Source: Phallusia mammillata (lineage: Eukaryota). From it: a DNA stretch of 64,000 nucleotides. The translations under genes and the position numbers were made by a program. The notes under the pieces were generated by a model. That model made no database searches and was not told the DNA's origin. It saw only the letters and a program-made list of their open reading frames with translations. The stretch covers positions 1,364,001-1,428,000 of the forward strand of contig OZ281500.1 of assembly GCA_965637545.1 (NCBI GenBank), in the 5' to 3' direction. Shown here one piece after another: positions 40,801 through 63,037 of this stretch (positions are counted from its first letter, which is position 1; each line of letters starts with the position of its first letter).

Positions 40801-43800
40801 GGGAATTGAACAGGGAATGAATTCTAGAATTAATTTACCAGAATTTATAACCAAAATAATGAAACATATAAACCTGATTTGGATGTGTTTTTTGGTGGAG
40901 CTGGGACTTCATCTTCTGAACTGTCACTGGATTCATCTGATGTTGAAGCACTCGAGTCACTACTGTCCATATTTTTAGGCAAACCCTTCACAATTGCAAC
41001 AGGCTTCTTTGATGCTGCTGGTTTGGCTAAGAATAAAACACATTTGTAAACAACTACATGGATCAGCGGCTCCCAACCTTTCTGGTGACCCCTTGATATG
41101 ATTTACCAATTTGCGGTGATCCCAAGGATAAAAGTAGAATAGTGGTTTTCCTATATATTGCCAGTTTATATATGCTACATCATATTTAACGATGTATCAC
41201 ATACACCACTTAATATATTTATAATGGATATATATTTGGCACCTACATTTCATTGGGTCCCGATCTTTTTCCTGGCACTTTCTACCATAATTGTTTCTGC
41301 AAGCATAATCTAATGGGCATATGCGATTTTGTAACAGTAAAAAAGGGCACAATCATTGTTAAATTGGAATAGTGGTTTTCCTATATATTCAATTTTACAG
41401 AAACTGTGACATATTTACGCACCATTCATTATAATTGTAAGGGATATATATTTGATGGATACATTCAGTATAGTACCAATACTTTTGTGGCCTGTTATAA
41501 CATAATTGTTTTTGTTAGCAAAAACCAATGGGTCCCCACACACGCGCCGTTAAGTTTCTACATACCAACAATATTTCAACCAGTGAAAAAATGGTCAAGT
41601 GACGACCGCGTTCATGCGTGAAGCAGAGGCATTTTTTCCATGCGCCACTATCATCAATCACTCCCATTGCGTCAGCTGTGCACTGAGCAACAGGCAAATA
41701 CAGTCATGACGTCATACACATCGCCTGGCCCTGCCGTGACCCCGCAGCGTTAACGTTTACAGTGCAATATCACTAACATCGTAACATCTTAATTCAAAAA
41801 AAGTAAGAAAATAGTCAAGTGACGAGCAGAGGCATTTTTTCCATACGCCACTATCGTCAATCACTCGCATTGCATCAGCTGTGCACTGAGCGAGAACAAA
41901 TTTGACAAAAGACAACATATAAAAACATATTTTTACTATTACTGAGCCGATTGCACTGAAATTTTTAACAGCCAACAAGGAGAACCCTATACACAGCTGT
42001 TTAAAATTTCAACAGGTTAAGTCTTGTATTTCTGACCTCATTAACATGATAACAAACAAAAAAATATTTGGGGGTAAATGGGTGAAAATGGATATATACA
42101 ACTTCAAGTTACAAAATACATTAAAATACGCTGCAATGTACCAATCAAAAAAGTAAGAAACTCCAGAATCATCTGCTTTAGCAAGTATAGCCATTTTAAA
42201 AATTTCACGTTTTGGGGGGCTGTGGGTGAACCGAGGGATCAAATGGGGTCAAAATTCACATGGACCATCTTTAGACCAATATCTATAATGTGTGTAAATT
42301 TGAAAAAGTTTGAACCATTCTTTGTTGACCAAAACGTGGGAACAAATCCACGTTAAAAATTTCACGTTTTAGGGGGCTGTGGGTGAACCGAGGGATCAAA
42401 TGGGGTCAAAATTCGCATGGACCATCTTTAGACCAATATCTATAATGTGTGTAAATTTGAAAAAGTTTGAACCATTCTTTCTTGACCAAAACGTGGGAAC
42501 AAATCTGTGTTAGAAAGAAAAAAAGAAAAAAAAATATAGACAAAAACAATATGTGTCCCCTTCAGGGAAGGGGACCCATAATTAGTAGGCTCTAAATAAA
42601 CAATGACTGTATTTTTTCTCAACAATAAAGTGGTCGATGAGTTGGGGTTATTGGTCCATGGCCTAAAACGAGTTGGGAACCATGCCAACGACCCCAGGCA
42701 AATTGTCAGGCGACCCCAGTTGAGGTCGCGACCCACAGGTTGGGAATCGCTGACATAGATGAATGCAAAACAAACTAGAAGGGTGGCTTAGCACATTTTG
42801 TTGTTGCATTTACACTATAACCTATTTTAAAACATTAATATATTTCCTATGCTTATTTTGTATTGGGTCCCATATTAGCCATCTTCTTTTATAACCTTAG
42901 CAGTTTCTGCAGGCAAAAACTCCCCACACATGAAAAAAAATGGAAATGTCTTATGTAAGCATATGTATGTTGTGTTTGACCAGGCACCAAGAACTAAATG
43001 AAAAACAATTGCAATGATGAAATGTATGGGCGATACTTTGAGATCACGAAAGCACATGACAAGTTTTCATTCCCAAATGCTAAAATGCATGTGTTCAAAT
43101 GTATTATATATATATATACAACATGTCAATTGAAATAAAAAAGGAAAATCAAGAAAATAGTTTAAACACTGGATTATTTTAACTTAATTTTAAACATGAA
43201 ATACAACATGTCAATTGCAATAAAACAAAAAGTAACAGTTTAACCGAAATTGATTGTTTGGTCAAAAGCAAAATTGGATAAAACACTGAGTTATTTTTGC
43301 TTAATTTTAAAATGTTTGTGAGAAAGGAAACAGTCAATGCTTATGTATATTATTTTGTACAAACTAAATACATTAAAACCTCATACTTGGTTTGGTGTCA
43401 TAAGAGGCAGGTGGAGGAATAGCTGCTTTCTTTGTAGCCGGCTTCTTCTTCGCACCTTCATCTTCTGACGAATCTTCATCACTGGATTCTTCCTCACTTG
43501 AGCTGCTTGACTCAGCTGCCGCTGTCTGCTTCACAACTTTTTTGACTGGTGCCGGTTTTGCTGGAGCTGCTTCTTCTAAATTGTGTAAACATTTTATTTA
43601 AAGTTGTTGGTAAAGCAGAGATTTTGTGCTTGTTTCTAAGAATTACACCAAAATAGCTAACATACTAAATACTTTACCTTCACCAGAGGAGTCATCAGAA
43701 TCATCCGATGAATCACTGTCATCAGATGACTCGGATTTTTTCACAGGAGTAGCTTTAGCAGGCGGCTTGCTATTGGTGGATTTGGTGAGAACCTTTTTCT

Positions 43801-46800
43801 TGGGTGCTTCTTCTTCGTCACTTGAGTCCTCGTCGTCACTGTCATCAGAGTCTGTAGAAGCAACAACTGCTGGTGGCTTCACAGCTTCAACCTTCGCTTT
43901 TGGTTTTGTGATGGGTTTGTCTACTTCCATCTTTTCATCTTCACTGGAGTCTTCTTCACTGCTGCTCTCATCATCTGACGAGGATTCAGGCTTGGCTTTG
44001 ACAGGAACAGGCTTTTTGGTAGCCTTAGAGGTAACCTATAACATGAAGGATTTTTGAATGTAACCTAATTATTAGTAGCACCCAATCTTTTAAAATTACT
44101 GAAATAAAATTAATATGTATATATATATGTGCCAATATTAACATGTACCCATTAATAGTTTATTGCTTACAACTTCATTTTAACAAAACTTGTTTCTAAC
44201 TGTTTTCTTTGACTTGAAAGAATGTAACCTAATTACCAGTAACAGCCAATCATTTAAAATGCGCAAAACAAATATATATATAAGCTGTTGCTACCAGGCA
44301 TAATGACAACTTTATATAGCTCTTCTACTTTATACAATTGATATGTTTGTGTGCCACAAGCGATGTGTGCCCTTTACTGGTTTATTACTTTCTACTTCCT
44401 TTTAACCAAATCTGTTTCTTACAGTTTTCTTTGGAGGTTGTTTGACTTCTTCCTCACTTGAGTCACTTGAATCTTCTGAACTTGACTTAGTCGGTTTTTT
44501 CTGGTAAACATGAGTTGTTGTTATAGCAAGCTTTAATTGAGATACTTTAAAGTATGAAAATGGAAAAACTAGACTTGATGTAAAAACTAGCAACTACAAC
44601 TAAATGCTCAGTTTTGAGCTTGCACCTTTGAAGACATGTGTTACAGTTACAAACATTACCTGCACTAATTAGTTTGAGATTTTTTAAAGATCGAAAAAGG
44701 AGAAAAATAGATTTGCTGTGAAAACTAGCAACTGCAACTGAATGCCAAACTTTAAGCTTTGCACCTATTGTAGACATGTGTTGGAGTTACAAACATTACC
44801 TGCACAACTGCCATGGGTTTCTTGGCAACAGGAGGTTCATCATCTTCTTCCTCACTAGAATCACTTTCCTCCTCACAAGAAGAGGACTCCTCCTGTTTCT
44901 TTGCAGGTGGTGCAACTTTTTTTACAGGTGGCACTTTTATTTCTAAAAAAATAGTTGCATGGTTGGTAACTTTTGGTTATCTTCCTTAACAGTGAAACAT
45001 AACAAATGCACTGCAGATAAACATACCTTCATCAGAGGAATCGTCTGAAGAGTCTTCTGAAGAGTCAGAACTTTCTTTTTTGACTGAAATCATAAAATAA
45101 TTTTGAAAATCTGTTCTCAGTGTAATTTAATGCAACAAGTTGCAACAAACCTAGTTTTTGTGCCTTGCTTGGAGGGACAGCTTCCTAGAAAGTAAGAACG
45201 TTATTTGCTAGTGATTGGTTAACTGTGCATTATCAAACACACTTATAAGGAAACACTAAACTTGGGATATCATATCAAAACTTTAGGCATATCATGTTCA
45301 ATAATAAAAAAAGAACAAAAATACAATTTAAAACACAAAAATACAATTACATCTTCATCAGAGCTGTCTTCACTTTCACTCGATGATTTTGGATCAGAAT
45401 TCCGTTTTTTGGCTTGCGTTTTTTTCACAACATTGTCACATTTCTTCGTCTGGTTTGTTTGCAACCAGGATTCATACAAACTTAATAATGTTGGATGGTT
45501 TGCATCAGGAATTTTCTGCAGGAAAGCCAAGAATTTAAAACTACTATTACGTATCCATGCAGCAACAAGAACAATGTTTAGAAGTTTTGTTACAAAACAT
45601 ACATGTACAGTCTTTTGCTACCCAAACATTCTGCTTTTTCACGTTTTCTTTTTTAAACATTTTTTTGTGGAAATAAACTTACATGTCAATGCCTAGTACT
45701 ACCATATGGCAAGACACAAAAGTGTTTTACCGCCTGCACTACCAATTGGGATACAGGTATTTTTATGAGTGGCTAGGGTTCCTTCCCGGGAATGTCTCGA
45801 CAGAAAATTCTCAGGATTTCCCGGCAAAATTAACTTCTCGAATCCTGGGAAATTTGTTTTTAATTCCCGGGAAACAGACAATCAAGAAAAAATGTTCAAA
45901 TTTCCGCTAGTTGTTACCAAAAAACGATGTTTTGTAATTTTAATTGCAAAGGTGGCTTTCTGATATATATATATATACTTCCATTTTATATATTCTATAC
46001 AATATTTACCAATTTAATATACACATCATTTGATCTACACATATGATTGTTTTCGCAAGCAAAAACGAATGGGTCCCCACACACGCGTTTGTGCGGATTT
46101 ACGGTAAACAAACGTCCTGGATATTTTTAGATTCTTAAGGAAAAACTTAACCAACTTTAGCAATAACCCAACTTTAAAAGTTTTGTCCGTATTCTTTTTT
46201 CATGTCATATAATTACAAAAAAACAGTAAATAGGAACAGGAAAAATACTTTTAATTTAATCTCATGCTTTGACCTCGATTTTCGTTTTGGGGGCTTGTGG
46301 GTGAACCCTTGGGTCATTCAAGGTCGAACTTCAGGAGGATCAAATTTAGATTAATAACTAACATCTGTCCAAATTTGAATAAATTTGAAGCACTCTTTCT
46401 TGACCAAACGCGTATAACACACCAGCGTTAGACAGAAGAAAAAAAAGAAAAAAAATATGGACAAAAACAATATATATGTGTCCCCTTCAGGGAAGACCCT
46501 TAATGATAAAGTAAGTAAGCGTTTTTATACGAGATGGTAAACTATTTTCGCGAATGCGCTACCCAGCGGTACTAGAAAAACCAATTTTATTTTTCGAAAT
46601 TTCTGAATCTTGTTTAATCAAATAAAATTGCAAATATAGTTTTAATCGACAAAATCACGCTAATTAGATACCTCCAGCGAAAATAAACTAATTTTAGCGA
46701 TTGCAATGACATAATTATCCACGAAAAAAAACACCTTTTTTGGCCGGGATCCCGGATTCCTGGGAATTTAAAACATTATTCAAAAGATTCAAAAGTTTTT

Positions 46801-51782: not shown

Positions 51783-54700
51783 CTACAGGGTATAATCATA
51801 ACTTCCATAAACACTGTCCACAAACTTGCTGTCTTCAAGAATGTAGCTAGTTATGTTGCTGCGGCTTGGACAGATTGCAGGATCATAACTGTACAAAAGA
51901 CCTAAAACACAAACAAGCATACATTTGTATCAATAGTTCTGATATATGAAATTAGGAGGACTAAGTTTATCGAAGCGCTTATAGGTGTTTTTTTGCTGGC
52001 CTTTGTAATGTTTAACCAAGTGTTGTTCATCCAGCAGTTTTATTATAAATAATCGACGTTTCAACGTCCTATACAAGACGCCTTCATCAGGATAATGACA
52101 TAACTTGCAGGACAAAACTCTTATATAGCGACAAAGTGCAAAACACACACGGATACATTATGCCTGGCAGCAATAGCCTATTTTTGTAATGTTTGTTAGT
52201 AGATTTTGGTAAGGCCAGCTTCTGTTACCTGGCTGGTTATTGGTCCAATCTCCAGTTTTCTTCTGTGTGAAGTAATGGACGTTGACTTTGTGTTCCTCTA
52301 AGTACTGTGTGTCTTTACGGGTCATTCCCCACCAAACCTGCAAATGAGATGCTTAAATCATTGTGAACTTTAGGAAGTTGTAGAGAAATGATTTTTCGGT
52401 TTATTTAACAACACTCCCGTGTTTCAATGGACTGTTTTCTTTAGAGCAGTGCTTTTTTAGCTTTTTATGTTATTTTTCAACCACTACCAAACCTCTTTAC
52501 AAGCTCCCCTAATCACTTTATTTCCATTTTCTGATATGAGGGTCTTTACTTTCGCCTCTTTTGCCGTATTGTTAAACCCAACTAAGTTCAGAAACGAGTG
52601 GAAAACTCAATGTTTTCGGATAATTAAGGTTTTCAATTACATTTTACCTTTATTGCGAGTCCACCTTGACAACCTTCTCCGGCATCTACCGCAATAACGT
52701 AACTACCAGGCAGAGGCTTCTGTATCGATGTTTCAGTTTTTTTGTCGTTCTGGAAACAAAATTTCAGTAAAGGGCGAAATTAAAATATGTTTGCACCAAC
52801 GTTAATTAGGAATAGACCGAGTATCAGTATGGACCTAGTCACGTGACAACTCTCGCTTGCAACTAGGTAGTTTTTGCGTGACGTAACTGTTGAACATCGC
52901 CCAGCCACTGTTTGGTTTCACGGCAAATCGACGCCAAAAGGTTTGAAGCCTTGATCGGTTTTAGCCTCGAGATGGCTTGATTTTTTTAAAGTTAATATCA
53001 TTGGGTTAAAACTTTTTGAACAATGCCTAATTACTACGTACAAGGGTCTCTACTGGGCATGTTTAATAATCTCGTTGTAATTGCAACCATAGGCATCCGC
53101 AGGGGAGAAATATTTTGCCAACCCACCACATACTTCAGTGATACTTAATATTGTGTTTACTGTATTACTTTGCTACATTGGGATTGTCAATAATGAGTAG
53201 CACTGTCAGATGATATTTGTTCTAAAATACCGTTTCTCGAGCGGCGATATGACGATAACATTGCCCTCCCCTGTTTGTTTGTTTTCCTGCGGACGCCCAT
53301 GATCGCAACAGTATTGGATGTTGGTTTACTTCTACAACATTGTCACTCACGTGGTTAGTTCCGTGGTAAAGATCGTCGAGACGCAGTTTCAGCATCCCTG
53401 CCACTTCTCCTTCTTCCCGCAATGATGATTTCCATTCGTTTTGCTCGATCCTGACGTCTGCGTAGCGAACAACGTCACACAATTACGTCACTGACTAGAA
53501 ACACGCTTTCTGACTTGCCTGTTTTCTTTGAAGTTTCTTTCGGGGCCAAGTCGTCTCCAAAGTCCACCGTGATATTTTCGTTCACTGCTATACATGCACC
53601 GCTGGAAAGTTTTTGAAGTTTAATTCTTTTTACGTTTGTTATGAAACTTGAAAACTTTGACTCGTCACTATATTAAGTCCCTGCTGGCGATACGTAATAG
53701 CGGCGAATCGGGTTTACTATGCACAGCCACTTTGTCAAGCTTTTTTTGTTCTAACCGGATTATGCGATTAGGCGGTGATTTCACCCACAGCATGAGTTTG
53801 GAGCCCATGTATGCAATTAAGCGGATTTTCCGGTTGTCAAATTTGTTTAACCGGATTTGACTGTGATAATGTTTCGGTTGATTGTAATTTCAAAGGGTCA
53901 AGAGACACTAGGTGTAAAAAATAGTGCTGCACATATCAAATAAGTATTGTTTAGAACTGAAAAAAGTTTAAGCTGTCCATAATTTTGCTAAATAACGTTG
54001 GACTTATTTTATTTCCTCGTTCTTGTAATGTCCGCCAGCGAACTGATTTATACTGCAGCTTTGGCCTTTGCCAATTTTGTGACTTAGTTTGTAGGGTTTT
54101 ACGCAAAATTGTCACAAAGAATATCTAAAACAGGGGTGAGATTAGAACCAACAACGTTTAGAACTCGTGGTTTAAAGCCAACTAGGAGCAAAGGATCCAC
54201 CACGGCTAAGACTTACGCGCCCAAGCCGTAGTTGAAAACCACACCAATCTCAGTTTTCCGCCATTGCCATGTTTGATTTTGAAAGAGCAAAAAGAAACCA
54301 TCATCCGGATCCGATTCATCGTCGTCCATATGCACGTGCCAGAACTGGAACGAAATAAATGGTATTTGCTCAACCTTCAGTTTAAAGCAGTGGTTCTCAA
54401 CCTTTTTTGACAAATTCCTTTCTTATCATTTTAAAACATTTTCATTCATACCTAATATACCACGTAGTAAACGCTGAACCATACCAAGATCATTTAAAAT
54501 TGGGCCTTTGATAAACGTCACAGTTATATCCCCAGAGCTAAAGTGTTTATTTATAAACCACATGTAAAAAATTAAAGTACATTTTTCCGTCAAGTTTTAA
54601 AATTCCTGCTCGGTTAGGAATCCCTGCATAGGCCTAACGAAGAAAATCGTCGTTTCGGAATTTTAGTTTAATATAAGATAAGACTACATTATCAATGTTT

Positions 54701-57490
54701 CTGTCAATGTTAACATTAACAGAAGATGTGGTCCGAGTTTTTGCGGAGTCAGTTATTCTTCTACTCACCGTCCAGTTTTGAACCGCACATGGGAAGTGTA
54801 CCCTCATCCGATATAAGCCAGGAGGAATTTGTAGAGGTCTGTGTAAAAATTAATGTTTTTGAAAAAAAATTAACTTTATGCAGAACACATTCTACAAACA
54901 AAATAATGACATATACTATATGCCATATAGCCTACTCGTGGCCGAATTCAACCTAATCTACCGACGCGTAAGATCAACTTGTTGAAACACCGGTACATGA
55001 CGCTTTTAGTATGGTGTGTGGCCACAGCGTGTACATTTAATGTTGCTCTCAGTGTACTCAGGAGCCTGTATGTATGCCCAGACACATGAATTTCTATGCT
55101 GTGCATAAACTAGTGTATGGCCATAGCTTGTATATCTAATGTTGCCCACAGTGGTCCTCAGTGTACTCAGAGAGCGCGTATATATGGTCAGACATGTGAA
55201 AATTAATGCTGCACATTAGCTGGTGTGTGGCCACAGCATGCACATCTTATGTTGCTCTCAGTGTCTCAGGGAGCCTGTATGTATGCCCACAGAGTATTTA
55301 AAAAGTTTGTGTGTATTCTGAAGCAGATGAAAAACTGTAACATTGAACATTTACCTGAAGATTGTTGCCTTTCCTTTCAGTCCACCTTGAGGTGATTCCC
55401 ACCAGTCGGTTACCCGTATTCCCGAACCATCAGTTCTCACTCTAAAAATGTAATAATTGTCAGATGTTTGTGGTCGTGTGGCTCCAATGTTTTAAAGTAA
55501 TCAAAACACCTTAATAATGTTTCGTCTGATGAACGGCCATCGTCGGAAATTGCCCGAACGTAAATCTTGTAGTAGGTCATCGTATCCAATCCCTCGATGT
55601 AAGCTGATATATCGTCCTTGCTTATATCAACCTCTAAAAAATGTACAGGATTTATCAGCTCGGGTCAAAGTTTTTACAGGCTATCGAAAAGCTTATTAAG
55701 TTTATGTAAACATAGTAAAACAGCTCAATTGTCGATTTCGCTGAAGTTTAAGTTTATCGGCCACACGCAGCATTTTGTTTCGACAAATCTAACCCACTTA
55801 CGACTTACCAATTGGGACGTCGTCATCGGTGGTGACGCGAACCTCGTATGACGACACATTCGTCCTTTTCCACTCGATTTCTATGGTGCCTGCGGTCGCT
55901 TCGAATACAGTGATGTCTTCAGGTGCCGCTAGGTCTGCAGATTCACGTGCAGAAACAACATGCAATAAATATACTGATTCTGCATGATCTCTATGCCGCC
56001 CAACAGCACTTCAACATGTTTGCTTTTTCAATTTGTGCTCGAAGCCGCTTATGGTTTTTTTTTCTACGAATCGTAGCTCAAAACCGGCGTATGTTGTGGC
56101 CTACAAACTGCTCTTATCATATCGTACGCATGCGAGTGATAAGAATGTAATGTATAACTTGGTTTATTGCACACGTTGAAAGTCAACTTGTCAAAGCGGT
56201 AGAGTCACAATTTTTGCGATGTTTCTACGTTGGCGAAAGAAGTGATTATTTTTGCAGTTTTAAGGAACCATTTGCAGGGGAATTCATATTCTGTATTCTG
56301 TCGAAGACTCGCAAATACATTGCCATGTTCGTTTGCTTACTGCTAGTTTGTTATTTGTTTAATTACCCGCAGATGAAATGCTTATGCAATTAAGGCCCAA
56401 TATGGCGTTGTGATTTCCTCATGCAACGCCTGCGGAGGTTCGAGGCGACCAAACCGGTTTTCTGATAATTCGGAAAGCTTCTAAGATTCTTATTGAGATA
56501 AGTCGCCCTGTTTTTCGCCCGATTATTTTTGGTAAATGCTAAAATATACTAACCACAAAAACTGCGTTGAAGACCTACAATTTAAACACGTTTTGTTGCA
56601 ATTGCAGTAGCCAGTAGTTATGTTTTGATTTCAAATTTACTGGTTAAACTCAAGTAAATGGGTTTGTAAATAGCAATTGTATTTACGAATGTTTAAATAT
56701 TAAAATGACTACGTTACTGGAGTGAGAATTTTAATCTTTGTAAAGCTATTCTAAATTTCTTGATTCCAAACTCATTTTTCACATTGAAACAATTCGAAAG
56801 ACAAGACAAGCGAGAGATATACCAGGGTATTGTGCTTACTTGTCACAAACTCGTGCGTGGCTTCTGCGCCGTCAGTTCCATTGAGGTCGCTTCCTCTGAT
56901 GCCAACCTCGTATAAGGTGTCAGCCATGAGACCCGCAAACGCCGCCTCTGCACTCTGCGATTCTGCCGCCTGAATTTGGTTGTTTGTAGCCGGGTCCGTT
57001 AAGCGAATCTAAATAAAATCAACGAATGGCGATTTTGTAAACTTGAATTCAATTACCTAAAGACTTTTAAAAGAGGTCGTAACGTGTAAAAACAAGACGC
57101 AATTAAAGTTGTCTTAAGCTTTAGAGTGATGGAATATTAACAACATTTCCTAATATGGTAACAACAGACACGGGCCTAAGAAGAAGCTTGATTTTTGCAC
57201 TGATTAATTATAACACTTATAACACCGGCTTTTGCAATGAAATGATTTTACTAGCTAACCGCTCTTTGGTATTTTTTCATTATGCTACTTAAAAAATGTA
57301 TGACGATTAAAAAATTATTTGCATGGCGTACCTTGTAGCCAGTGACGTCATCAATTGGGTCCCACGTGACGTAAACTGACCGTGACGTCACGTTGCTATG
57401 AATATTCGTGGGCGCCGCGTAGTTACCGAACGCTATCGGCAGGAAACAAGCCAAAAGTCCGATGAAAAATGACGCTTCTGTCCTTTTCAT
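51783..57490 (-). CDS. Secreted protein A: signal peptide + 2 FN3 + 2 CBM2-like domains; 12 exons: 57332-57490, 56840-57008, 55809-55934, 55510-55633, 55355-55441, 54769-54838, 54217-54344, 53519-53601, 53351-53457, 52648-52749, 52229-52337, 51783-51901 (460 aa)
   Basis: Signal peptide MKRTEASFFIGLLACFLPIAFG; FN3 patterns (VYVTWDPIDDVTGYKI...LMADTLYEVGI; IEIEWKRTNVSSYEV...GLDTMTYYKIYVRA); all phases close; exon-for-exon homology with gene B. Confidence 0.88.
52005..52181 (-). mobile_element. Family A copy with intact core (ribozyme 52049-52096), sense to gene A intron 11, with an inverted terminal segment at 52155-52181
   Basis: Minus: ATTATC-CTGATGAA-GGCGTCTT gtat AGGACGTT-GAAACGTC^-GATTAT; the family tail ATTATGCCTGGCAGCAATAGCCTAT sits on the plus strand at the other end. 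Confidence 0.75.
54130..54212 (-). mobile_element. Probable tRNA-derived SINE fragment (similar B-box fragments at ~14420, ~25395, ~61875)
   Basis: A-box-like TAGCCGTGGTGG and B-box-like GGTTCTAATC on minus; no complete cloverleaf. Confidence 0.35.
55005..55290 (-). repeat. Three ~100-110-bp tandem units, same family as 20826-21130 (gene A intron 5)
   Basis: GGTGTGTGGCCACAGCGTGTACATTTAATGTTGC is the reverse complement of the 20.8-kb unit. Confidence 0.75.
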
Positions 57491-58957
57491 TTTCGCACTG
57501 ATCTCTAATACGTGATAATAAAGTAGATCGCTGTGCTGCTGCAACAAACTAAAACGAATGGATTTTGAATTACAACTTTTGTACAACAGATTTGACCAAA
57601 CTAATTCTTGTTTAAACATATTTGCCGACAGCTTTTTGTTTAGCGGGTCAAATTTGCCTCTTTGATTAAAATATTCACGAGGGTCCTAACTCATTTACGA
57701 AGTCTACCGCTCGTTCAATATGATCCATATTTTTAATCGGTACCAACTTTCACTCATCTAGTCTTATATGTAGCATATATGTCTGATGCGACACTTGCTA
57801 ATAAACTCTAAACTGTTAGCGCGTTTATCTATCGCTGTCAAGTTTTAACTCTTTAAATAGTATTTTGACACAAACCGCTGCGGAAATCTTGTGCAATTAA
57901 ACTGGTCTTTGCTTAAACCGAGTTACAACGCTCCGAGCTACTCTCGCCCGTGAGGCTTTGCTGAAACGATTTCATGCAGATAAGATGGGTTTTCGTGGCG
58001 GATGTGTTTGTTATGATCGTGCCAGTTTGCACCTACTTCAGGGCGTCAGATTTGTTTTGCGATGGTTTAGTTCATGATAGGTTGTCGATAACATTACGTT
58101 TGAATTTGACCTTGATGACGAAAAAAATGACCTTTGAAACCATTTGTATAAGATCAGCACCTGATGTTTTTCATTTGATGTTGCCAACTAAACTCCAACT
58201 GCGTATTATCCGTGGTAAACATCCGTTTTTATTTAGTTTTTTCTGACCTGAGAGATTGTTTTTCACCAACATACAGAATTTCGTTGTCGAATGGTTTGTT
58301 TATTGGTACGTATTTTTGGCACACGTTAACGTCAGATAATAAATAGGTTAGGCCTGAAATTGGTGAAATAAGCGAAAGCATAATTAGAAAGGGCACATTT
58401 TAACCAATATTGTGTAAGCATACGTGAAATTTGGAGGGCAAAGAATGCAAGCAAACAATTCAGTTTTCAGAAAAACAAATTTAAAGTTCACATACTGGAT
58501 GTTTTGGCTTTATAACCAACGATAAGGTTATGATCTATTGTGTTAAATTTGAAACGAAAGGGTGGAACAATCAACAATCATTTTTAAACAGGTATGTTTT
58601 TGCGAAACATTCTTTGCCCTTTGGCAGCCAAAATTCGTTTTATTTAAAACAAATGTTACAAGATTTTGTTATTATTAGTTACATATTCGCATTTGTTACC
58701 CACAATATTATTAATATTTTGATGTTTTATAAATATTCGGGTATATGGGAGATTTTAACACGAGTTAGCTTAAAAAAAAACAGACAACAGCCAAAAAAGC
58801 AAGCATTAGCCGAAAAAACACACAAAGCAAAAATGATCATCGCCTTAAACCAAGCGAACCCTTGAATTAAAAAATTATTATCCAATGTCGAGTGCATTAA
58901 CATCATGAAATATCAGATAATTATTGAAAAAAGTGCTTGTGTTGTTTGGTGGTTGAT

Positions 58958-61900
58958 TTAGAAAGAGACTTCCTTGTCGGGTTCGTCCATAACCGCGTCA
59001 ACGATGGCTCCACCCAACATGGCTTGACCAGAGAAAGTGAACTGATTGTCGCAAACGGTTGCGTCGTAACCGTAAATGAAACCTGCGCGAAAATTAAATA
59101 CTATTGTATTCCAAGTCAAGTCAAGTCTAATTTGTTCGCATTGTCACTTTATCAAATTGCCATTGTCATACGGTTTCGTCAAACAGCAAGGACACCGGAT
59201 AAAAATATGGGTTATCGAGTCAAGTGTCCTGTTTTTTAAATGATGCTTGTAGTGTATATCAGCTGATTGCGGAGTAATTTTATGTGTGCAGTACGCATTG
59301 TCATGTACTATGTTTTCCAAGGTATAAGATTTTCTGGTAAAAGTTTCTGAACCTCAAACTATACGACCCTTATTTTTGGAATTCGATCGTACCTGGTTTG
59401 GCATTGTGCCACATGGTGTCATCTGCCTGAATGAAGTAAAGCATGTTGTCTGTGGCACCTGGCATAGTGGTGGTGTCCTTCAAGGTCATTCCCCATTGTT
59501 GCTGCAAAACAAAGGCGCCTTAGACTACAAGTTGAATATCATGTGATGGAATCCAGTCGTTAATTTTAGGCCAGGCATTGAGTTTACCTTGGATGCAAAA
59601 TTATGGTAAGCTTTGAGTGGAAGGAATTTCTCACAGCTTATGTTAACGTTTGTGTTGGGTTACAACGAAATCATTTAAAGTTAAACCCCACGTACCTTGA
59701 TCATGATACCTCCTGGACATCCTGGTCCGGTGTTGAGGGTGAGCACGAATGTTCCTGGGCCTGGTTTCTCAATGGTCTTGTTCTTAAAGACATCATCGCC
59801 CTGTACGTCATAAACAAATTGTTACAATCATGTGTTGGGATATAGCAGGGCTACTCAAATGGCAGACCGCGGTCTACATCTGGACCTTTGAGCCGTTGAT
59901 GTGGATCTTCGGCGCGCTTTTGATTATTACTGCATACACTTTTGCTGTGCACATTTCTGTATCAATTTAATTAAGACATGTTGCATTCGCATTTCTGAAA
60001 ATAGTGTCGGGACCTCGGAATTTTTAAACTTCTGTACTTTGACCTTTGAGAAAACTAATTGAGTATCCCTGGGATATTGTATTTTTAAAAATACACTGGA
60101 TCAGCATTTTGTGTTCAATGCGAGATAAGGTTTTACTGCTTACCCAGTTGACACCGTGGAACATTTTGTCAAGTCTGAACTTGCACCACCCAGCGGCGAA
60201 GGCAACTCCCTCGGTAATGTTCTGCCATTGGTATTGGTCAATTTCGATCTCTATGGATTGCAAAATAATTTTTTACTTTAAACAAAGCAAAACCGCCAAC
60301 AACTTGCCTATATTACTCTCTATACTTTACAAGTGATTGCTGAAAGTGCTTTAATTTGTGATTGATAAAAAAATTTTCATGTAAAGATATTGGTTGATTC
60401 GAAAAATACAGCATTAGCTCAAAATTTCTTTGCTTATTTGCTTACCTTTGGTGGTTCCTGGTGGTGTAGCCCCTGGGTTTCCGACCTCATCTCCGTATCT
60501 TACAACAATGCTGGTATTGACGAAGTCACAAGTCCTGTGAAAATCATGTTTCATTTGAAACGTTTCCCGGATTGGCCGAAAACAGTGAAACATGTATTGG
60601 CAAACGTATTAAAAGCCTAGCCTGCATAAAGTTTTATAACTAGGAGGTTGTTGCTCCTTTTTAACCACTTTGATGCGTTGTTTCTGATAAGGTTTGTTAC
60701 AAACTTTGAGGTATTCTAATTTGTCTCTAACATCGAGAAATAGTCAAGGACCGATTCGTTAACTTACATCTCTTCCTGGAAGATGAAGTTCATTCCAACT
60801 TCGGTTTTCCTCAACATCCAAGGTTTGGATTGTACGAGCTCGTAGTAGCCATTTTCTGGGTCGGATTGGTCCATATCTTGTTTAGCTCCCCAGAACTAAA
60901 ATGACAAAGCGGGATGTTAAAAAAGGCGGAATCAAAAATAATCACATTAACTCAAACTTTCAAACTGTATTTCGATTGTCCCAACCGAAAAAAATTCGCT
61001 TTAAATATCTATGTTACGGTATATTGCTGATAGAAAACATGCATTCTTGGAAAACATGCGCATTCCTTTGACCTGAGTGTAAGCTCGGGGTAAAAATACA
61101 GGACATAAAGTGTGCAGTGTGTGAGTAAGTGGACGGTATTAGAAACCCGAATAAGCACAGCCTAGAGGAGTGATTTTTAAGCTTTGTGTGATTGTCACTG
61201 CTTAAAGGAGTCTAAATCTCTATGCCGCGATGCATTGCTGTTTATGAAACTACTGACCTTGATGTATTGAACGGCACATGGGAGTTGGACACCGATCTTG
61301 TAGACGCCACTGGGAATGTTGACCGGTCTGCATAAACAAATAAAGTTGTTGTTGGTTTTTGTTACCACTCAATTTAGTTGTAGCAATTTAGCATTGTTGT
61401 GGTGTGATGTAGCTGACACCTTAGATTTGAAATTGTAACATGCCCGAGCCAAACATGCGTTGGAAACTTTAGGCCACTTTTCGTATTGCTTTGCTAGATT
61501 TCTTGTGGTAAATTGTGTTAAATCGTTTCTCAAAAGTTTTAACCCATCTTGGGCCTCGTTAAACCATTGTAGCATTGTAAGGTTGTTGAAATGGGCACTG
61601 ACCTGTAAATCATACCGATTCCACCGAAGATACCTGAGCTACCTGACCACCAGTTGGTAATACGAACACCGGTTCCCTCTGTCCTCAGTCTGTTGAAAAT
61701 TTACCAAATTAAAAGTTGGTTTCAAACAAATTGCTACAAATCGCTTTAGTTCAATTTTTGATCATTTGTGGAGAAAGAGAATTGCATTGTTTGAACGTTT
61801 TAAGCTGGTAATTTCGTTGCAAAATATTTTTCGTTATGTCTTATATCTCGTAGATTGAGCACACAGTGTTTGGTTGGATTCGAACCCGGAACCTAATGAT

Positions 61901-63037
61901 CTTACCTGATCATGGTTTCTTCTCCGTCGCCGTCGATTCCGACAGGTGTGATGAAGATGTCGTAGAAGGTGACGCCTTGAAGTCCGGTAATAAGAGCCGA
62001 GTTCTCACTTGGGATGATGTTCATTCCACCTAAAGTAACACAAAACGTTTTAACTATTTATTCAAATTTATGAACACATTCAGTCATTCATCCTTATGAA
62101 TTTATTATGTATATATTTCGCCCTTACAGCATCATCGGTAAAATGTTTTATTTTTTCTAGTTTTCTTTCTTTGCGACTTATAACGATTTCTATTTTCGTG
62201 TGAAATGTTTTTTTTTTGTGATGACGTACCCAATTCGTCATCTTCTGACGTCACACGGATGTCGTACTGGATCGAGTTGTTGACGGGTTGCCACATGATG
62301 TCGAATGAGGTGGTGGTAACTTCACGGACCACGATTCCGGTTACTTTACCGATCACTGATGGGATAAAAGAGTGTGTAAAAATCTTCAAACTTGTTAAAG
62401 ACACAAAACACTCCAATAACCATTGCTATGTACGAGAGTGTTGGACCTTTTAGCTATACTTGTGTAAAGTCTTAATGAAATTGGCTTAGTGGTACTTACA
62501 TGTGGTGAAGGTGAAGGTGTTTGGGGCGCTTTGGGTTTCGTTGCCATCGCTGGCTACCAAGCTACCGGTGTATGTAGTGGAAGGCATGAGGCTACCGAAG
62601 TTAGCTTTGTTCATGGTCACAGTCTCAGTTTGCCCGTTGTTGAGAGTAATCTGTAAAGAACATGATTAGTCATCATGACGTGGCAAAATACGACCACAAA
62701 ATAGATTTTGTTAAGGCTGTTACACTGGATATCGTTGCGAATTGCTTCTTGGGCGATTTGTAGTTTATCACGTTAAATAATCCAACTAATTTTGCCTTCA
62801 AGCCAGATAAAATGCTGCACAAATGGTTCTAGCAGATAAAACAGTTTTGGAAACGTAGTTTTGTGATTGTAACTTTGCACACATTCTCACCACATATTCT
62901 TTGGCTCCTTCGACAAGGTCCCATTCAAGTGCGACGCCAGAAGCGCGTTCGGTGATCGTCAGGTTTGCGGGAGTGTAGAGGAGGGCTTGAGCCGCGGAGG
63001 CAAAGGCAAAGAGAAGAATTGCTGCGTGAAATTTCAT
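58958..63037 (-). CDS. Secreted protein B, tandem paralogue of A; 12 exons: 62891-63037, 62500-62650, 62230-62355, 61906-62029, 61603-61689, 61258-61327, 60768-60895, 60446-60534, 60144-60250, 59696-59800, 59393-59501, 58958-59082 (455 aa)
   Basis: Signal peptide MKFHAAILLFAFASAAQA; two FN3 repeats; seven internal exons have the same sizes (126,124,87,70,128,107,109) and all intron phases match gene A. Confidence 0.9.

Follow-up and report, generated by a model that had tools for sequence, protein, structure and literature searches.

Tunicates are, to our knowledge, the only animals that make cellulose. Even though their cellulose synthase is known, we know of almost no proteins that keep the microfibrils of the tunic in place, arrange them, or cross-link them. 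Members of carbohydrate-binding module family 2 (CBM2) bind cellulose, chitin, or xylan via the same face. Plant-parasitic nematodes secrete CBP, a non-enzymatic protein that consists of a signal peptide and a single canonical CBM2 of bacterial type, and acts on plant walls. Animal GH9 endoglucanases carry an N-terminal CBM2 (PMC5977491). In Ciona, a protein specific to tunicates, Epi-1, which was found to be cytosolic and contains trefoil domains, is needed for the tunic cuticle and for cellulose fibril order (bioRxiv 10.1101/2024.09.30.615758). Eight groups of horizontally transferred genes are listed in a recent Ciona survey, and the family described here resembles none of them (PMC13390645). 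This family was found in a stretch of 64,000 nucleotides from Phallusia mammillata, hereafter the window (assembly GCA_965637545.1, contig OZ281500.1, positions 1,364,001 to 1,428,000 of the forward strand), where two neighboring genes, A and B, encode proteins with two FN3 domains followed by two C-terminal units.

On the best reading of the predicted models, each gene product is secreted and non-catalytic, carries two divergent CBM2-like modules on an FN3 stalk, and is made by an animal that produces crystalline cellulose. No endogenous cellulose-binding protein was named in the tunic literature searched, and no tunicate CBM2 protein was described in the literature searched. The genes are regarded as a divergent family of CBM2-like type whose architecture is new for animals, with putative glycan binding and a proposed role in the tunic.

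Gene Models and Protein Architecture

In translation, the minus strand between 51.5 and 63.2 kb holds two series of mutually homologous short open stretches, on which the splice sites of A and B were placed by hand. Each model has 12 coding exons; gene A (51783-57490, minus strand) encodes 460 amino acids and gene B (58958-63037, minus strand) encodes 455. The exon phases 0,0,1,1,2,2,0,2,1,0,0,1 are common to both, and the introns are GT-AG throughout, save that intron 8 of A has a predicted GC donor. The best donor of this intron, as judged from sequence, is AG/GCAAGT (GC-AG, exon 53519-53601), and the same site in B reads AG/GTAAGC. The two proteins are 35-36% identical, and the units of A align with their B counterparts at 43-49 standard deviations above shuffles. 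Within intron 5 of A, a 110-bp unit stands twice in tandem (window 55048-55263, 76% matches).

RNA-type contigs of X1, a run of the same organism, contain CT..AC joints (plus strand) exactly at nine B junctions, namely 12/11, 10/9, 9/8, 8/7, 7/6, 6/5, 5/4, 4/3, and 3/2, and junction 11/10 is backed by a loose X1 end at 59503 that reads the end of exon 10. A contiguous X1 contig (58282-59085) comprises B exon 12 and a 3' untranslated region (UTR) of ~676 nt (58282-58957). For gene A, a 1520-nt X1 contig contains exon 1 and 5' UTR (57332-57542) followed by the first letters of exon 2, and the 5' UTR extends at least to 57542. The DNA-type contigs of run X2 are collinear with the genome and have no joints. 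Since the spliced X1 contigs skip the modeled introns, both genes are transcribed and spliced as modeled, with RNA cover for ten of the eleven B junctions and for the first A junction. The basis for B junction 2/1 and for ten A junctions, including the GC donor, is splice sites, phases, and homology. Among three RNA-type runs of one study, spliced transcripts are well represented in X1 only. Compared with the window, the X1 and X2 contigs between 57101 and 63100 have dozens of single-position differences and a few small indels, which are presumably allelic polymorphisms between individuals.

Both proteins start with a hydrophobic signal sequence and have no later hydrophobic segment; hydropathy revealed no transmembrane segment in A or B, and no catalytic domain was found in either. 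The mature proteins are acidic (isoelectric point 4.3-4.6) and measure about 48 kDa. Residues ~22-183 constitute two FN3 domains. Pfam fn3 (PF00041) matches two stretches in each of the Clavelina relatives P0002 (E 2.1e-16) and P0003 (E 8e-10), with which the window proteins align over both FN3 domains. On the single B exons that were scanned, fn3 was the only Pfam family found and CBM_2 did not appear; the fn3 matches (Table 1) remain below threshold because single exons are half domains. The C-terminal half comprises 270 amino acids with six invariant Trp and four conserved Cys in the alignment of six family members. Three Trp fall in each unit and are kept in all six members, and each unit has a conserved Cys pair 51-54 residues apart (in B, C229/C280 and C371/C425).

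An earlier sequence-only reading of this locus had described two 12-exon paralogs with identical phases, a signal peptide, two FN3 repeats, and neither a transmembrane segment nor a catalytic domain. The hand-built models match its coordinates, 51783-63037, to the base, and hydropathy and Pfam agree with the architecture. The peptides that it quoted and the three Trp per unit are also present, the latter being invariant. Its claim that the two units are internally similar held in part. The likeness of unit 1 to unit 2 is not significant at the sequence level (pairwise Smith-Waterman z <= 2.4; hhalign profile-profile P = 0.036 over 92 columns). The profile alignment is collinear and pairs, in order, the first Trp, a PxGxY/F strand, the first Cys, the second Trp (FW in unit 1 and WGMT in unit 2), the third Trp in a Q...W context, a G..F/Y strand, and the second Cys. 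Moreover, a phase-0 intron precedes the second Trp at the same place in both units. The units are considered alike because of these collinear motifs, the two matching Cys, the shared phase-0 intron, and the same predicted fold, and they likely arose from an ancient internal duplication.

Predicted Fold of the C-Terminal Units

The Clavelina protein P0003 served as the fold proxy, with the other Clavelina proteins and the exons of the window and of L001 as alignment rows. The Clavelina homologs are 32-38% identical to the window proteins, and the alignments are shallow. The AlphaFold (AF2) model of the C-terminal half of P0003 is all-beta, with a predicted local distance difference test (pLDDT) score of 70 and a predicted template-modeling score of 0.56. 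Unit 2 modeled alone reaches a pLDDT of 67.5; its first 52 residues are poor, including an insertion of ~20 residues (model residues 32-52) with pLDDT under 50, and the remainder lies at 73-91. Foldseek on the two-domain model returned only noise with low template-modeling (TM) scores and high root-mean-square deviation (rmsd) because the orientation of the domains is uncertain, and the domains were therefore searched apart.

VIA-align was run against 48,161 PDB representatives, the search with the two-domain model covering unit 1 only. The top match of unit 1 is 2xbd_A, the internal, xylan-binding CBM2b of C. fimi XynD (Z 7.1, rmsd 3.1 Å, 85/87 residues). It is followed by 6bt9_B, the CBM2 of chitinase ChiA74, and 5xsv_A, an archaeal chitinase CBM2, and then, within ~1 Z unit, by CBM3, cohesin, pilin, and mu-homology domains. 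For unit 2, 2xbd_A is again first (Z 5.5, 87/87 residues) and 5dhe_B second. Foldseek with unit 2 against 350,542 chains places five CBM2 structures at the top, namely 5dhe_A (E 2.3e-3, probability 1.00), 5dhd (probability 1.00), 2cwr, 2czn, and 1e5b, with TM scores by target of 0.39-0.55. Four more CBM2 entries (6f7e, 6qfs, 1xbd, and 3ndy_E) occur among the top 18, and probabilities of 0.96-1.00 are given to CBM2 entries only. In the ESM Atlas shape search, which presents rows in the service's own order with some later rows having higher TM, an fn3+CBM_2 cluster is listed first for unit 2 (TM 0.46). For the C-terminal half, a tandem CBM_2 protein that aligns over both units is listed second. 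A CBM2 profile built from actinobacterial genomes retrieves every CBM2 PDB entry named among these matches, and the PDB neighbors are thus genuine CBM2.

Both units are therefore predicted to be beta-sandwiches whose nearest solved and predicted neighbors are CBM2, and each score alone is modest. Over the four structure libraries searched, CBM2 modules stood at or near the top in all searches except Foldseek on the two-domain model. The case gains its weight from the recurrence of CBM2, which heads VIA-align for both units as well as Foldseek for unit 2 and is listed first or second by both Atlas searches, across two aligners and two libraries. The AlphaFold and Foldseek check proposed in the sequence-only reading accordingly gave, on the Clavelina model of unit 2, five CBM2 structures as the five best matches.

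Gene Cluster and Distribution

A profile of exon 7 has three matches in the 240-Mb genome, the third being 3.8 kb past the window end. There, a hand-built model gives gene C, intact, with 454 amino acids and 12 exons of the same phases, on the minus strand upstream of B (L001:1415-8704, corresponding to G000:C7:1429415-1436704). The locus is a tandem cluster of three genes in the minus-strand order C, B, A; the pair described earlier is adjacent as claimed and is joined by a third paralog.

The taxonomic survey covered annotated proteins and one short profile. With the exon 7 profile, HMMER was run exhaustively over 1.84 billion representative proteins and yielded two full-length relatives only. 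The top match of this search, P0001 (3116 amino acids, ten short stretches at profile positions 13-25), was taken as a repeat or low-complexity match. Word-indexed searches of 5.8 billion proteins found only three family proteins, all uncharacterized and all from the ascidian Clavelina lepadiformis. The sole non-family relative was fish FNDC7a, with a match over 30% of the query that presumably represents the FN3 part. In Clavelina, the P0003 gene is followed in tandem, 2.8 kb downstream, by a fourth member with a 465-amino-acid product and the same exon breaks (L045:15581-19839, OX392439.1). A mitochondrial ATP synthase B gene is located upstream at this Clavelina locus. In a maximum-likelihood tree, the three genes of the window genome separate from three Clavelina genes with a split support of 99/98 and long branches, and the duplication is therefore lineage-specific. 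The 12-exon structure is older than the divergence of these two species. Bacterial and archaeal genomes were also scanned for relatives of the C-terminal half, a weak test because the patterns were Clavelina-specific; 162 patterns matched and none was confirmed.

Proposed Function and Alternative Readings

Matches to cellulose synthase (CesA) and GH6 occur ~3-4 kb apart on the same strand at two loci of the genome (G000:C3:28480812-28484297 and G000:C6:17808396-17813236), which suggests two tunicate-type CesA genes. Tunicates have CesA in just this arrangement, and the genome is accordingly that of a tunicate. With two CesA+GH6 loci, the animal therefore makes cellulose, in keeping with the setting assumed in the sequence-only reading. 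By analogy with CBM2, the modules may bind glycan with tunic cellulose as the ligand, a reading to which we give a probability of about 0.45. In hhalign alignments that span nearly the full length but are not statistically significant, the three invariant Trp of both units fall on the columns of W17/W54/W72 in Cex CBM2a (numbering from the 1exg alignment). These three residues are known to form the cellulose-binding face of CBM2. Four of the six members also have a CBM2-like WNA or WNG motif around the second Trp. If exposed at the surface, as is presumed from the likeness to type-A CBM2, the three Trp of each module would line up as a planar aromatic strip and stack against the hydrophobic side of a crystalline beta-1,4-glycan, most likely the cellulose microfibrils of the tunic. 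Two modules per chain could provide avidity or bridge neighboring fibrils, the FN3 pair could act as a spacer or a protein-docking arm, and each module would be held by one disulfide.

Several results weigh against this reading. Even at E <= 10, Pfam CBM_2 (PF00553) matches neither the C-terminal halves nor the single units of P0002, P0003, and P0004, and a six-frame search of the whole genome gives no match either, so that the HMMER check proposed earlier came out negative; in fact, no Pfam family at all matches the C-terminal halves of these three proteins at E 10. A PDB sequence search with the unit 1 profile found nothing. When the six-member unit alignments are compared by hhalign with 31 actinobacterial CBM2 domains, the likeness is not significant (unit 1, P 0.086 over 88 columns; unit 2, P 0.064), with P 0.22 and 0.34 for the FN3 controls and column-shuffle nulls of 8/150 (unit 1) and 12/150 (unit 2); a separate run gave P 0.048 over 15 columns only. 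The conserved Cys pair joins mid-domain and C-terminal positions, in contrast to the N- and C-terminal disulfide of CBM2. Model confidence is medium (pLDDT 70 and 67.5), and the modeled protein is a Clavelina homolog instead of one of the window proteins. Z values of 5.5-7.1 fall within the beta-sandwich background stated for VIA-align, in which Z under 8 is common for sandwiches. Moreover, the taxonomic survey called for in the sequence-only reading found the family in two tunicate species only, Clavelina and that of the window, with the relatives uncharacterized, which falls short of a general tunic component. Being so narrowly distributed and evolving fast, the family is hard to reconcile with a universal part of the tunic. 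In the tree, the long branches and lineage-specific duplications fit a fast-evolving accessory family better than a core component of the tunic. Formally, the units are best termed divergent CBM2-like: the predicted fold agrees with CBM2, whereas Pfam recognition and the terminal disulfide are absent. The CBM2-like reading made earlier thus stands for the predicted fold, has the Trp on the CBM2 columns in a non-significant alignment (profile-profile P 0.05-0.09), and falls short in Pfam and in the disulfide.

The same results lend themselves to a second reading, in which the units are generic beta-sandwiches of a protein-binding matrix or adhesion protein, the likeness to CBM2 reflects a common topology, and the Trp belong to the core. 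Pilin, cohesin, MSCRAMM, mu-homology, and alpha-2-macroglobulin domains score almost as high as CBM2, within 1-1.5 Z, and FN3 domains are typical of protein-binding matrix proteins; the non-significant sequence likeness and the disulfide pattern point the same way. On the other hand, a common topology would leave the lead of CBM2 in the fold searches and the restriction of high Foldseek probabilities to CBM2 to be accounted for, as well as three invariant Trp per unit in CBM2-like order and spacing that align with W17/W54/W72. A generic sandwich is judged less likely than binding to tunic cellulose, and more likely than the chitin reading below.

Somewhat less probable still is that the modules bind chitin or a foreign glycan, and serve a gut chitin barrier or the recognition of microbes or food particles instead of the tunic. 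The four best Foldseek neighbors of unit 2 are archaeal chitin-binding CBM2 (5dhe, 5dhd, 2cwr, and 2czn), 5dhe_B is second in VIA-align for this unit, and several of the top structures for unit 1 are chitinase CBM2 modules. Recognition proteins commonly show tandem, lineage-specific duplication with long branches, and the good representation of spliced transcripts in only one of the three RNA-type runs would also suit such a role. In basal chordates, Ciona among them, the gut membrane is reported to have a framework of chitin nanofibers (PMC6109156). Nothing specific counts against this alternative, and the models do not reveal which ligand is preferred. Finally, a zincin metallopeptidase, suggested by the ESM Atlas feature search for the C-terminal half (0.78-0.84), was rejected, as there is no HExxH, scores of this size are within chance for the tool, and the fold searches point elsewhere.

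For the favored CBM2-like modules, the origin could be descent from animal CBM2 such as that on GH9 (PMC5977491), horizontal gain of a bacterial FN3-CBM2 cassette, or convergence. The boldest version of the proposal is a long shot: that this is the first non-enzymatic tandem cellulose-binding family in animals that orders tunic cellulose, and that its modules, perhaps with the whole FN3-CBM2 cassette, came from the actinobacterial-type donor of the horizontally acquired CesA/GH6 gene. If such a shared donor were true, the family would be a second remnant of the cellulose toolkit that was transferred, by now intron-rich and diverged beyond sequence detection.

The family offers a directly testable candidate for a tunic cellulose-binding protein. 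It also shows that Pfam can miss a CBM2-like fold in an animal genome, which bears on surveys of carbohydrate-binding proteins and of horizontally acquired genes. Even if the modules bind no glycan, the genes would represent a tunicate-restricted, rapidly duplicating secreted family.

Features of the Window

Table 1. Positions of genes A and B and of their coding exons in the window.
Feature	Position	Strand	Basis
Gene B, 455 amino acids, 12 coding exons and ~676-nt 3' UTR	58282..63037	minus	model, spliced X1 contigs
B exon 1: start codon, signal peptide, first FN3-1 strands	62891..63037	minus	hydropathy peak at residues 3-22; aligns with exon 1 of A, C, and Clavelina proteins
B exon 2: FN3-1 second half	62500..62650	minus	weak Pfam fn3, E 0.077; junction 3/2 in RNA
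B exon 3: FN3-2 first half	62230..62355	minus	Pfam fn3, E 0.0016; RNA joints
B exon 4: FN3-2 second half	61906..62029	minus	model, RNA joints
B exon 5: unit 1 start, first invariant Trp (NWW)	61603..61689	minus	model, RNA, alignment
B exon 6: unit 1 PxGxY strand, first conserved Cys (C229)	61258..61327	minus	model, RNA, alignment
B exon 7: unit 1 second (FW) and third (PW) invariant Trp, G.NF strand	60768..60895	minus	model, RNA, alignment
B exon 8: unit 1 end, second conserved Cys (C280), then linker	60446..60534	minus	model, RNA
B exon 9: unit 2 start, first invariant Trp (QW)	60144..60250	minus	model, RNA, alignment
B exon 10: unit 2 PxGxF strand, conserved Cys (C371)	59696..59800	minus	model, RNA, alignment
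B exon 11: unit 2 WGMT motif (second Trp), third Trp (MW)	59393..59501	minus	model, RNA, alignment
B exon 12: unit 2 end (YGYD..C, C425), stop codon	58958..59082	minus	model, RNA
Gene A, 460 amino acids, including 5' UTR	51783..57542	minus	model; 1520-nt X1 contig at exons 1-2
A coding exons 1-6	57332-57490, 56840-57008, 55809-55934, 55510-55633, 55355-55441, 54769-54838	minus	model
A coding exons 7-12	54217-54344, 53519-53601 (GC donor), 53351-53457, 52648-52749, 52229-52337, 51783-51901	minus	model
A exons 1-2: signal peptide and FN3-1	56840..57490	minus	model, alignment, hydropathy
A exons 3-4: FN3-2	55510..55934	minus	model, alignment
A exons 5-8: unit 1 (CBM2-like), Trp at DWW, FW, TW; Cys 239 and 291	53519..55441	minus	model, alignment
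A exons 9-12: unit 2 (CBM2-like), Trp at EW, WWGMT, DW; Cys 378 and 432; stop	51783..53457	minus	model, alignment

Elsewhere in the window, at 43626-44057, overlapping open frames on both strands contain Ser/Asp/Glu-rich runs followed by KKK, and resemble an exon of an acidic nucleolar-type protein.

Comparison With Known Systems

CBM2 modules: The best structural neighbors of the family units are CBM2 modules such as Cex CBM2a of C. fimi (Cellulomonas fimi; 1EXG), XynD CBM2b (2XBD/1E5B), and the archaeal chitinase domains ChBD2/3 (5DHD/5DHE, 2CWR), with which they have in common a predicted beta-sandwich of ~100 residues, three conserved Trp in the same order, and, in four of the six members, a WNA-like motif around the second Trp. 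In contrast, the family units have no Pfam or significant profile-profile recognition, and the predicted disulfide runs from a mid-domain Cys to a C-terminal Cys, whereas the termini are joined in CBM2. Unit 2 also has an insertion of ~20 residues, and the units are animal-encoded with four exons each.

Actinobacterial FN3+CBM2 proteins: Glycoside hydrolases and cellulose-binding proteins of actinobacteria have the same order of FN3 followed by CBM2-type modules. However, the present family lacks a catalytic domain and Pro/Thr linkers, and has two FN3 domains with two CBM-like modules.

Ciona Epi-1: Like the family described here, Epi-1 is tunicate-restricted, has a signal peptide, and is linked to tunic organization, a link that is proposed for the family. 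There is no sequence or domain relation between the two, and Epi-1 was rejected as the identity of these genes, being an unrelated trefoil-domain protein.

Animal GH9 endoglucanases: The N-terminal CBM2 of these enzymes likewise shows that CBM2 is present in animal genomes (PMC5977491). It is recognizable by sequence and joined to a catalytic GH9 domain, whereas the tunicate family carries no enzyme.

Nematode CBP: Both CBP and the present proteins are animal-encoded, secreted, and non-catalytic, with CBM2 or CBM2-like modules. In contrast to CBP, the tunicate family has two divergent modules together with FN3 domains, and would act on a polymer of the animal's own making.

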